From the NCBI GenBank assembly GCA_033442325.1, contig JAWQFM010000008.1, positions 310,001 to 374,000 of the forward strand: a stretch of 64,000 nt of DNA. The letters are read 5' to 3'. The number at the start of each line of letters is the position of its first letter. The first letter of the stretch is position 1. Of the stretch, positions 53,296 to 63,957 are shown in pieces. Position numbers and translations under genes: made by a program. The notes under the pieces are model-generated. The model searched no databases, was not told the DNA's origin, and saw only the letters and a program-made list of their open reading frames with translations. The stretch is from Salpingoeca rosetta (Eukaryota; Protista; Choanoflagellata).

Positions 53296-56200
53296 ATGGC
53301 GCTGCTGATGCTGGGTGATGAAGAAGTTGAAGCCGTGCTCCTGCAAATTGGCTGGAATCGAAGGTACATGGTGCTGTTGAGTATGCTTGTACGTGTGTGT
53401 GTGTGTGTGTGTGTGTGTGTGTGTGTGTGTGTGTGTGTGTGTGTGTGTGTGTGTGTNNNNNNNNNNNNNNNNNNNNNNNNNNNNNNNNNNNNNNNNNNNN
53501 NNNNNNNNNNNNNNNNNNNNNNNNNNNNNNNNNNNNNNNNNNNNNNNNNNNNNNNNNNNNNNNNNNNNNNNNNNNNNNNNNNNNNNNNNNNNNNNNNNNN
53601 NNNNNNNNNNNNNNNNNNNNNNNNNNNNNNNNNNNNNNNNNNNNNNNNNNNNNNNNNNNNNNNNNNNNNNNNNNNNNNNNNNNNNNNNNNNNNNNNNNNN
53701 NNNNNNNNNNNNNNNNNNNNNNNNNNNNNNNNNNNNNNNNNNNNNNNNNNNNNNNNNNNNNNNNNNNNNNNNNNNNNNNNNNNNNNNNNNNNNNNNNNNN
53801 NNNNNNNNNNNNNNNNNNNNNNNNNNNNNNNNNNNNNNNNNNNNNNNNNNNNNNNNNNGTGTTGTTGTTGTGTTGTGTGTTGTTGTGTGTTGTTGTTGTG
53901 TTGTTGTTGTTGTTGTTGTTGTTGTTGTTGTTGTTGTTGTTGTTGTTGTTGTTGTTGTTGTTGTTGTTGTTGTTGTTGTTGTTGTTGTTGTTGTTGTTGT
54001 TGTTGTTGTTGTTGTTGTTGTTGTTGTTGTTGTTGTTGTTGTTGTTGTTGTTGTTGTTGTTGTTGTGTGTCTATTGCGTCTATTGCGTGTGGGTCTATTG
54101 CGTACGTGCGTGTGTGTGTGTGCGCGAGAGAGAGAGAGAGCTTACACCCAGTCAAGCATTGTCGTGCATGAATTGTGCTCTTTTGTGAATACACTACAGA
54201 CACGCACACACTGTCTCAGACACATGCACTCATACATGCGCGCTCATGTTTCCCTGCCTGCCCTCCCCACTGGCCTTTCCCAGACCCCACTACTATCGAG
54301 CATTCACCAGAGATCAAAGCCGGCTTGGCATCAGCCTCATTGACTTTTTGCTTGGTGAGGGGTAATGTGTTTGCGTGTGTGTGAGTGTGTGAGTGTGTGT
54401 GTGTGTGCGTATGTGTGTGTGTGCGTATGTGTGTGTGTGTGCGTGTGTGTGCGTGTGTGCGTGTGTGCGTGTGTGCACGCGCCCACCCGCCTGCCTGTGC
54501 ACTCGTCCATTTGTTTGTCTGCCTGGTACACTGACTGGCTTCCCCTCTCCTTCTCTGCACCGTGCTCGTGCGATGCCAGGGCTTGGCTGCATTCACAGCA
54601 CAACTCCTCATGAGGGCACCTGGTTTGAGCTGCGATGCGGCCTCATCTTCAACGTACGTTGCCATCTGCACGAAACAACACACGCTTGACATACCACAGT
54701 GATGTTATTGTCACGCTGACCCCAGCTCACATGCACACACACACACGCACACACACACGCACACACGCACGCACACACACACACACACACACACACACAC
54801 ACACACACACACACACACACACACACACACACACACACACACACACACACACGCACGCACGCACGCACGCACGCACACGCACAGTTCTATGACCAGAACC
54901 GCGCAGGGGTGTTGGATGCCGAGGCGCTCAGCCACGTGGTGCTGGACATTATGCAAGCGCGTCAAGATCCATGTAAGCACGTGCACACACTCCAATACTT
55001 GGTTGCAGTTGGCTGCAGGAACTTCCAGCTACCACCTGAAGCCACCTGCTGATCCAGTGCTCACTTGTGACACAGCACTCCCGCACACAACTCCCCACCG
55101 TTTCTCTTTGCTACACCCGAAAACACACGCACACACACACATACACACACACACACACACACACACACCGCTCTCACTCTGTGTATCACACACTCAAGTC
55201 AAGACTCACAACTCACTCTCGCGCAACACCCACGCACCCTAACGCCCTACCATTGCTGTACCACTCGCACACACACTCGCACACACACTCGCGCGCACAC
55301 TCGCACACACACACACACACACACACATTGCACAACACCACGCATGCATCCGTGTGTGCAGATCCGAGTCCCATTGCTGCGCGCCGCGTGGCCGAAGCGC
55401 TTCTGGACAACCGCCCCGCCATTGACTTTGCCACCTTCCGCGCACTCGCACAGGTGCTACGCTGGGACACGTCGCTCGTTGTATGTGTGTGGGTGTGTCT
55501 GTCTGTCTGTCTGTCTGTCTGTCTGTCTGTCTGTCTGTCTGTCTGTCTGTCTGTGCGTGTGCGCATGTGTGCGTGAAGAGCAGGGGCGGCTGTTGTGATC
55601 GTGCAGTTCAACTCATTCCCCGAACACGAACCAAACGTGCACGCACATGTGCGCGCGTCTGTCAGACAAACGACGTCCTTCGATCCGCCTCTTTAATTTG
55701 CAGGTTTGCATGCCGTCCACACACATTTACGCGCCTGTTGTAGCACTTGCCAATCTCTCTTGCGCTTGCACACACACACACACACACACACACACACACA
55801 CACACACTCTCTCTCTCTCTCTCTCTCTCTCTCTCTCTTTCAGGCAATCTCAATTTTGCGCTAACGCAATCACACAAGTTCACACACACACACACACACA
55901 ATTTCACATCAACTCATACTCACGCGCACACACACACACACACATGCACACGCCTACCCACCTGTTCCAGGGAGACGGTTGTGCACAGCGGCGGAGAGCG
56001 TGCGTCTGCGAAGCGTGAGCACGACCGCTCGATGGAGGAGCAAGAGGACAGCCCGCCATACCGCGCTGGTGGTGGCGGCGGCGGCAGTGACGATGAGTCC
56101 GAAAGCAACACCCTCCCTGGCACACCCGGGCGCGCAGCCTCCACGACCACGGAGCGAAGACGCGGTGGCAGTGTCGCCGACAACGACAACAGCAGCAACG

Positions 56201-62200: not shown

Positions 62201-63957
62201 CTTCTGTCTATCATCGCCTGTGGCTATCTCAAATTGTGTGTGTGGTTTTTGCACATTTGCCCCTTTTTTCATCAGCTGTTACCGCCCCTCACCGATTTGC
62301 GTCATTTACTCCCCTCCTCGTCGTGATTGCAGATACAGGCACTGCTCGCTATTCGCTTCTGTCACAGGAAGAGCTTATGCAGATCATCCCATCGGCACAG
62401 GCCGCCTTTGCTGCCGTAAGCAGTCGCGTTTTGCTGACTGATGTTGCCCTGGCAACTGTATGCGTGCCAGTGTGTGCCAGTGTGCGTGATTGTGTGTGCC
62501 CGTGTGTGTGTTTGTGTGTGTGTGTGTGTGTGTGCACACACACACACACACACTCTCTCTCTCTCTCTCACACACACACACACACAGAGACTCTCTCTCT
62601 CTCTCACANNNNNNNNNNNNNNNNNNNNNNNNNNNNNNNNNNNNNNNNNNNNNNNNNNNNNNNNNNNNNNNNNNNNNNNNNNNNNNNNNNNNNNNNNNNN
62701 NNNNNNNNGATTGGATAGTTTGCGGCCGTTTGGGTTTTGTGTGTTGTGTGAGTGTGTGAGTTTGATCCAATGTGTGTGAGTGTGTGTGTGAGTGTGTGTG
62801 TGTGTCAGTCAATGTGTGTGTGTGTGTGTGTGCACTGGTCGCGTCTATCGCTTCATGAGTCACGTGACCCCCCATCCATGTCTCGAGTCACAAACCCGCA
62901 AGCTCACACACACACACACACACACACGCACATCTGTACGCACAAACGCGCATGCGCAGGATGAGACGGTCACCGCTGTGCCTGCGCCCGTGAAAGTGTT
63001 TGGGGACATCCACGGGCAACTGCACGACATGCTTGCCTTCTTCCGCATCTATGGTGTTCCCCACACCATCCACGGTGACATTCACTACATCTCCTACCTC
63101 TTCATCGGCGACTTTGTCGATCGCGGCTCCCACTCCCTCGAGGTGCGCCACTGTTGTTGTTTAAGTTGTTGTTGTTGTTGTTGTTGCTGCTGCTGCTGTG
63201 TATGGTGGTATCACCAACGTGTTTAAGTTGTTGTTGTTGTTGTTGTCGTTGTTGTTGTCGTTGTTGTTGTTGCTGCTGCTGTGTATGGTGGTATCACCAA
63301 CGTGTTAGCATTGATGTCGTGTATGCTTGATCACGACTCTCGTGCGTGTACACTGCTGCTGTTGCCTGTGGTTGCAGGTCATCACGCTGCTCATGTGTCT
63401 AAAGCTGCGGTACCCCAAGCGTGTGTTTCTCGTTCGAGGTGAGCGCGCGCGCGTGCAAAGAGAGCTCGCAACGCCACCCGCTGTGTGTGCCGCTGCTCAG
63501 CGTCACGTTGCTGTCTTCGTGGCCATCTTGGCATGTTTCCATCCGCCCACACCTGCCGTCATGGCTCTTCTCACATATGTGTATGTGTGTGCATGCAGGC
63601 AATCACGAGGACTCGTGGGTGAACAAGTTCTTTGGGTTCAGGGACGAGTGTTTGCAGCGGCTGCCTGATGGCGTCATTGTGTGGCAGATGATCAACAAGG
63701 TTTGAAGCCATGGGTTGACTCTTGTGTGTGTTCGTGTACGTGTGTGTGTGTGTGTGCGTGTGCGCATGTGTGTGCATGTGTGTGTGTCTGTGCCGCTTGT
63801 GCGTAAGAGTTGCACTGTCATCGTCCTCTGCTCACAACTTGATGAACCCTGACGATGATTGCTTGTATGCGTGCATGTTGGCAGTTGTTTGAGTACCTGC
63901 CGCTTGGCGCAGTTGTGGACGACTCCATCCTGTGCATTCACGGCGGCATTGGAAGGG
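53296..63957 (+). CDS. Large PPP-family Ser/Thr phosphatase: two calcineurin-B-like EF-hand modules, a ~1000-aa low-complexity linker and a BSU1/PPKL-type catalytic domain (continues beyond the right edge)
   Basis: Catalytic exons [40 protein letters not shown]|[22 protein letters not shown]...CIHGGIG. EF exons YYRAFTRD...ISLIDFLLG|LGC...IFN|[11 protein letters not shown] and [22 protein letters not shown]. Joining all exons into one gene is inferred. Confidence 0.82.
53859..54066. repeat. (GTT)n microsatellite next to a gap
   Basis: Directly visible. Confidence 0.95.
60956..61009. repeat. 27-bp tandem duplication (AAGTTTTGGGGTGGGTAGTAGTACTTC x2)
   Basis: Two exact copies in a phosphatase intron. 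Confidence 0.9.
63158..63305. repeat. Tandem duplication of a TGTTTAAG-(TTG)n-(CTG)n-TGTATGGTGGTATCACCAACGTGTT unit
   Basis: Two copies that differ only in microsatellite length. Confidence 0.85.

Follow-up and report, generated by a model that had tools for sequence, protein, structure and literature searches.

The Bsu1/BSL/PPKL Ser/Thr phosphatases of plants and alveolates, among them Arabidopsis BSU1 (PDB 9tp7) and Plasmodium PPKL, carry a Kelch β-propeller at the N terminus. Outside plants and alveolates, Bsu1s have been described that have the same type of catalytic domain but no Kelch repeats, the accessory domain being made of EF-hands instead (Kerk, Mattice, Moorhead et al. 2021, Sci Rep 11:13681; PMC8249667). 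The members listed are from Thecamonas (XP_013758396.1), Monosiga (XP_001746829.1), Salpingoeca rosetta (within XP_004995703.1), Basidiobolus, Nannochloropsis and Cryptosporidium (XP_626384.1), and the last of these links the group to the apicomplexan EFPPs (EF-hand-containing PPPs), known since 2008 (Kutuzov and Andreeva 2008, as cited in PMC8785970), which also have EF-hands N-terminal to the PPP domain and are large proteins (TgEFPP, TGGT1_269460, is 218 kDa). We analyzed a stretch of 64,000 nucleotides of the S. rosetta genome (assembly GCA_033442325.1, contig JAWQFM010000008.1, positions 310,001 to 374,000 of the forward strand; hereafter the window, whose own numbering is used throughout) and concluded that the region from 54.3 to 64.0 kb on the plus strand is, very probably, the gene for an EF-hand-type Bsu1/PPKL phosphatase and the same locus that Kerk et al. 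entered from within XP_004995703.1. An initial annotation, made from the sequence of the window, had correctly judged the host to be a likely holozoan and had presented the gene as a possibly overlooked signaling module. Both the architecture and the S. rosetta locus are already described in PMC8249667, and the claim to novelty therefore fails; the apicomplexan EFPPs are older still.

We built a gene model from the exons holding the peptides quoted in the initial annotation, adding others that were revealed by homology. The model has 21 exons, running from 54285 to 63956 (plus strand), and its 20 introns are all GT-AG with consistent phases, so that 1597 codons are read with no stop. All of the catalytic and pre-catalytic peptides were found on the plus strand, each bounded by AG/GT splice sites, in exons 62021-62099, 62333-62415, 62960-63142, 63378-63438 (VITLL..LVRG), 63599-63699 ((G)NHEDSW..MINK) and 63885-63956. 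The order of domains on the predicted chain is EF copy 1, a low-complexity linker, EF copy 2, a polyglutamine (polyQ) linker and lastly the catalytic domain, of which the first half is present: the window ends (64000) within this domain, and the gene continues further.

The exons of the catalytic part (62960-63142, 63378-63438, 63599-63699 and 63885-63956, plus strand) encode the N-terminal half of a PPP catalytic domain that we assign, from its sequence, to a Kelch-less Bsu1/PPKL type. The core motifs by which PPPs bind metal and phosphate, here GDIHGQ, GDFVDRG, GNHE and HGGIGR, are intact and in order across exons 62960-63956, and the Pfam Metallophos model matched one of these exons with 29.4 bits. 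When the 61-residue exon 62960-63142 was compared with the PDB, the best match was BSU1 (E 5.6e-17), the best other structure reached 5.5e-10, and PP1, PP2A and PP2B lay between 1e-8 and 1e-10. The insertion of ~7 residues (GDI..I.Y) between GDxHG and GDxVDRG was covered by the BSU1 alignment alone: query residues 3-61 align to BSU1 residues 78-135 with a single 1-residue gap, but in the alignments to PP1, PP2A and PP2B the target segment is 7 residues shorter. The replacement of the HGGLS of PP1, PP2A and PP2B by HGGIG(R/K) is diagnostic for Bsu1/PPKL, and the S. rosetta gene reads CIHGGIGR at 63933-63956, with HGGIGR found as well in its orthologues from S. infusionum (P0177) and Monosiga brevicollis (P0293). 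The Kelch-bearing Bsu1/BSL/PPKL proteins share the insertion, the HGGIG(R/K) motif and ~50% catalytic identity with the orthologues; where they have the β-propeller, the S. rosetta gene has EF-hand domains and long disordered linkers.

Sequence identities point the same way. The S. rosetta catalytic part is 60-64% identical to the EF-type Bsu1s of Thecamonas and others and 51% identical to the catalytic domain of P0177, and word searches ranked the plant BSL1-3 Kelch phosphatases, at ~50% identity, as its best named relatives behind choanoflagellate and Thecamonas-like proteins. Pfam found no Kelch repeats in the open reading frames (ORFs) of the window or in the orthologues P0004 (Thecamonas), P0177 and P0293, whereas the plant BSLs in the same Pfam tables do carry Kelch families (PF01344, PF13415 and related ones). 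The full catalytic domain of P0177 scored 296 bits against BSU1, ~240-246 against PP1, 180 against PP2A and 160 against PP5. That PP1 is the second-best structure match could be taken to mean that the domain is a divergent PP1, and a PPEF/rdgC-type enzyme might also be considered, since PPEF is the classical EF-hand PPP and stood outside the score comparison because no PPEF was among the solved structures matched. We regard either assignment as extremely unlikely: the 7-residue insertion and HGGIGR are shared with BSU1 alone, BSU1 beats PP1 by ~50 bits in the orthologue P0177, PPEF has its EF-hands at the C terminus and groups with PP5/PP7 (PMC8249667), PP5 being the weakest match here, and in the published PPP tree the S. 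rosetta sequence falls within Bsu1 (PMC8249667). The BSU1/PPKL assignment that the initial annotation had drawn from the insertion and from HGGIG(R) is upheld, as is its observation that there are no Kelch repeats upstream.

Upstream of the catalytic part, the gene encodes two accessory domains. Using jackhmmer, we found a domain of ~160 residues common to many of the closest relatives of the catalytic exon and built from these relatives a hidden Markov model (HMM) of it, which matches two collinear sets of exons in the window. Copy 1 is encoded by exons 54284-54354, 54580-54653, 54885-54972, 55362-55453 and 55666-55703 (plus strand), joined by GT-AG introns, and when spliced it scored 56.7 bits (E 1.8e-19) over HMM positions 32-157. 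Copy 2 is encoded by exons 59234-59302, 59514-59645, 59854-59889, 60275-60327, 60526-60589 and 60819-60903 (plus strand) and scored 19.5 bits (E 4.9e-8). It is 30% identical to copy 2 of P0177 (blastp E 1.2e-15), contains a motif that matches FRGSGGLLRV of M. brevicollis, and its junction SIRE/LFNVYSDGR agrees with the published S. rosetta sequence; judged by sequence, copy 2 appears to be the more degenerate of the two. The initial annotation had reported two EF modules resembling calcineurin B and CBL, at 54283-54970 and 59208-59890, and had called for an HMM scan for EF-hands and Kelch repeats. The modules and their resemblance are borne out, the family HMM finding two EF copies with no Kelch, but both ranges were too short, the actual extents being 54284-55703 (five exons) and 59234-60903 (six exons), and the Pfam EF-hand models stayed below threshold.

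The profile of the domain matched KChIP, recoverin, neurocalcin, calaxin, calcineurin B and CBL4 over the whole length with E values from 1e-10 to 1e-17 (1e-14 to 1e-17 for KChIP, recoverin and calcineurin B), and an AlphaFold (AF2) model of the Thecamonas domain, with a confidence (pLDDT) of 84, matched GCAP1, calcineurin B, KChIP1, CBL2 and SOS3. Each module is a compact four-EF-hand domain of the calcineurin-B/NCS/CBL kind.

Between the two copies lies a single exon of 3079 nucleotides (55971-59049, plus strand), open in one frame and rich in His, Gln, Asp, Ser and Gly, which is the ~3.1-kb low-complexity exon noted in the initial annotation; the disordered linker that it encodes is ~1000 residues long. 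It contains no Pfam domains, and a word search with it returned no relatives, not even the genome's own protein. Copy 2 is in turn followed by polyQ-rich linker exons with consistent phases at 61137-61330, 61490-61553 and 61766-61839 (plus strand), the last of which is 60% identical to S. infusionum HSPAAKQKIASSALEAASPA and also matches M. brevicollis LPHSPASKAKITQAIMEAPSP; a longer exon, 61490-61591, was dropped when S. infusionum revealed the conserved exon at 61766-61839. The pre-catalytic exons 62021-62099 and 62333-62415 (plus strand), bounded by GT-AG introns, have tblastn matches to P0004 and P0177.

Because the frame is open through 20 introns and the architecture is conserved in orthologues, the sequence evidence supports the view that the EF domains and the phosphatase lie on a single polypeptide in S. 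rosetta, as the initial annotation had proposed. In S. infusionum P0177, a complete transcript-derived ORF of 1339 residues, copy 1 occupies residues 47-193 and copy 2 residues 674-827, with a long linker between them and the catalytic domain after them, and the annotated M. brevicollis P0293 (839 residues) has the same order. Two further transcript-derived ORFs, P0294 and P0295, whose own nearest relatives are the choanoflagellate sequences and which come directly after M. brevicollis among the closest relatives of the P0177 catalytic domain, combine at least one EF copy with the catalytic domain. At least three choanoflagellates (S. rosetta, M. brevicollis and S. infusionum) have the two-copy EF layout. 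Indirect support comes from RNA-like sequencing runs, which contained 0.91-0.94 of the words of exon 55971-59049; in X4, X7, X9 and X10 the values were 0.91-0.93 of its sampled words, as against 0.20-0.22 of those of 59200-63990, a stretch of which the model assigns 28% to exons. The DNA-like runs X1-X3 contained ~0.8-0.9 of the words of both stretches.

It has been suggested otherwise for the N-terminal part of this protein. Kerk et al. judged that part of XP_004995703.1 to be an "incorrect gene prediction" and trimmed it (PMC8249667), which would fit with two separate genes, an upstream one encoding the EF-hands and the low-complexity stretch and a downstream one encoding a Kelch-less Bsu1-type phosphatase, the single chain being an artefact of modeling. 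Even in the trimmed sequence, however, EF copy 2 and the catalytic domain are continuous with the big exon: as printed in the supplement it starts inside exon 55971-59049 and runs across the junction 59049/59234 (PMC8249667). This and the fact that the frame remains open between 54285 and 63956, through 20 phase-matched GT-AG introns, together with the S. infusionum, P0294 and P0295 transcript-derived ORFs and the M. brevicollis model, in all of which one or more EF domains share a chain with the catalytic domain, make the two-gene explanation very unlikely. The part trimmed as a presumed misprediction encodes EF copy 1, the better conserved of the two, and the long annotated XP_004995703.1 model is probably nearer the truth than the trimmed version.

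The initial annotation had further described the protein as Ca2+-gated. We examined the loops of the EF domains for the canonical arrangement of 12 residues with oxygen ligands at positions 1, 3 and 5, Gly at position 6 and Glu or Asp at position 12, and found that none of the S. rosetta loops has the full ligand set. In the second loop, Ala occupies position 5 and also position 12, a place taken by Glu in those relatives whose loops are canonical; the third has Arg at position 3 and Asp at position 12; and the fourth is wholly deleted in copy 2 (..RAYAG/IKHIQ..). Pfam EF-hand models remained below threshold on the exon ORF 59502-59666 (E 0.004-0.02) and gave no match on 54885-54980. The loops of S. 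infusionum are degenerate too, and M. brevicollis keeps one that is near-canonical (DSNRDDLLQLDE). Canonical loops of the form DxDGDGxxxxxE, scoring above the Pfam EF-hand cut-offs, occur in relatives such as Thecamonas P0004 (DTDGDGTISGSE), P0056 and the P0005 cluster. An EF-like loop at 60276-60314 (plus strand; Ser at position 1, Thr at 3, Asn at 5, Gly at 6, Val at 8 and Glu at 12) is out of frame and was rejected, as no GT-AG phase from the neighboring exons can reach it; whether by chance or as a remnant of the loop lost from copy 2, the resemblance has no place in the model.

Ca2+ gating of the S. rosetta protein is consequently unsupported by its sequence, because the loops are without canonical ligands and the Pfam EF-hand scores are below threshold. 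A truly Ca2+-gated single-chain phosphatase, in which Ca2+ bound by built-in EF-hands switches the enzyme on in the manner of a fused calcineurin A-B, would be in keeping with the fold and profile of the accessory domain, whose closest matches are Ca2+ sensors (calcineurin B, NCS and CBL), and with the canonical, Pfam-passing loops of P0004, P0005 and P0056. We nevertheless consider it unlikely for S. rosetta, where key ligands are missing, the fourth loop is deleted and the exons give either sub-threshold Pfam EF-hand scores or no match at all, the degeneracy of the S. infusionum loops arguing in the same direction.

The most plausible working model is a clamp acting in cis. The EF-fold domains would serve as regulatory or docking modules of their own chain, clamping an amphipathic helix, as calcineurin B, the CBLs and the KChIPs do, and the clamp would control access to the catalytic domain or its targeting. 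Such regulation would probably be Ca2+-dependent in the relatives with canonical loops (Thecamonas and several environmental members); in S. rosetta it would more likely be Ca2+-independent or weakly Ca2+-sensitive, because the loops have lost key ligands. Put more broadly, choanoflagellate EF-type Bsu1s may have a tandem pair of calcineurin-B-like domains that have lost their Ca2+ ligands through decay and act as Ca2+-independent "pseudo-sensor" clamps on a PP1-like catalytic domain in cis, with copy 1 of S. rosetta having been discarded as a misannotation in the only published description; we judge the chances of this reading being right and wrong to be evenly balanced.

Several points weigh against these conclusions. 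The cis-acting clamp is purely our inference, and the literature searched turned up no biochemical or experimental study of an EF-type Bsu1 outside Apicomplexa. Within that group, the EFPP of Plasmodium is described as probably an inactive pseudo-phosphatase (PMC3447748); the S. rosetta motifs, in contrast, are intact within the window, and the likeness between the two proteins is one of architecture. The reading of the gene as a single transcript depends on the gene model and on orthologues. Some of the exon frames were picked with the HMM in view, so that the HMM scores are not fully independent, although the GT-AG and phase constraints are. The model is also bounded on both sides, its 5' end stopping at an assembly gap (53457-53858) and the C-terminal half of the catalytic domain lying beyond the end of the window, and it was compared with the fragment of XP_004995703.1 in the supplement of Kerk et al. 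and with orthologues.

Comparison with better-known EF-hand systems shows both how close the accessory domain is to them and how the S. rosetta protein differs. It shares the compact four-EF-hand fold with the Ca2+ sensors of the calcineurin, CBL-CIPK and KChIP-Kv4 systems, and calcineurin also pairs a phosphatase with such a domain. In calcineurin, however, a PP2B-type catalytic subunit (CNA) associates with a separate B subunit (CNB), whereas in S. rosetta the EF domain is fused in cis, duplicated, degenerate in its ligands and joined to a Bsu1-type catalytic domain, and in the structure matches PP2B scores far below BSU1. PPEF/rdgC likewise has a PPP domain and EF-hands on one chain, but its EF-hands are C-terminal and it belongs to the PP5/PP7/PPEF group, whereas the EF domains of S. 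rosetta are N-terminal and its catalytic domain belongs to the PP1/Bsu1 group. From the EF-hand Bsu1s of Kerk et al. the S. rosetta protein shows no difference in kind. Those authors did not comment on the tandem EF copies or on the degeneracy of the loops, and our additions to their description are small: that copy 1 is genuine, that the two-copy layout is shared, that the S. rosetta ligands have decayed and that a gap probably hides a 5' exon. The contribution beyond the literature is one of annotation-level detail.

The locus mainly confirms what has been published, namely that Bsu1/PPKL phosphatases are not limited to plants and alveolates and that an old, EF-hand-bearing branch of Bsu1 persists in the closest unicellular relatives of animals. 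As S. rosetta is genetically tractable, the gene would be a reasonable entry point to this branch, and its tandem, ligand-poor EF domains suggest that the Ca2+-switch hypothesis needs testing rather than assuming.

The position of the EF domain varies among the relatives: it is N-terminal in Thecamonas P0004 and in the P0005 cluster, C-terminal in P0006, P0107 (Diphylleia) and P0123, and tandem and N-terminal in P0030, while in P0056 it flanks the catalytic domain on either side. Other Bsu1-type relatives have an FHA domain (P0018), a PH domain (P0011) or, in Gymnodinium smaydae P0002, a tandemly duplicated catalytic domain. From these sequences the accessory-domain repertoire of Bsu1 appears to be wider than the published dichotomy of Kelch and EF-hand.

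At the 5' end of the gene, a tentative first coding exon lies at 53296-53388 (plus strand), an ORF with an ATG and the donor GTACGT. It has a weak match (LLQIGWNRR versus LSQVGWSPR) to the N terminus of the M. brevicollis orthologue, with a score of 31 as against 20.7±3.0 for shuffled sequences, none of 300 of which reached it. Its phase does not allow it to join exon 54284 directly, and between the two lies the gap mentioned above, 402 N at 53457-53858, with (TG)n and (TTG)n on its flanks. Orthologues have positions 1-30 of the accessory-domain HMM, but these were not found anywhere in 53296-54283; this start of EF copy 1, of ~30 residues, would correspond to GRLDFQAFTGLIAQYAPTVDSARF of M. 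brevicollis. Because of the phase mismatch between 53388 and 54284 and the absence of these ~30 domain positions, we think that the gap may hide a 5' exon encoding the first helix of EF copy 1.

A second assembly gap, 100 N at 62609-62708, lies inside the intron 62416-62959, with microsatellite on both flanks. The Thecamonas, S. infusionum and M. brevicollis protein alignments cross the 62415/62960 junction without a missing residue, and GL833108.1, another S. rosetta contig from the same assembly, aligns to 62409-62534 and 62771-63186 at 90-93% and so spans the gap, adding no unique sequence of its own. The gap is intronic and harmless to the reading of the gene. Both gaps of the gene sit in microsatellite tracts, the introns being rich in (TG)n/(CA)n, (TTG)n and (CTGT)n repeats (53389-54130, 54360-54470, 54720-54880, 62470-62600, 62740-62950 and others, including 63751-63789).

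GL833108.1 itself is a small unplaced contig of 2193 nucleotides that holds a 90-93% copy of this intron and of exon 62960-63142. It is annotated with PTSG_11524 (partial, 391 residues), the sole near-identical protein found among 1.8 billion representatives, which differs from the product of exon 62960-63142 by one substitution and one inserted Val. The first ~317 residues of PTSG_11524 and the first 1633 nucleotides of the contig have no match in the window. This leaves two readings of GL833108.1: a contig that is chimeric or of low quality, or a partial copy of the phosphatase exon that arose by duplication and has diverged.

Just upstream of the phosphatase gene, an ORF of 158 residues at 52142-52618 (plus strand), containing VFVLVLCSVKDLRETLHEAYRLLKPGGKLIFLEHV, resembles a methyltransferase exon and apparently belongs to a separate gene; its stop at 52618 marks the 5' bound of the phosphatase gene.

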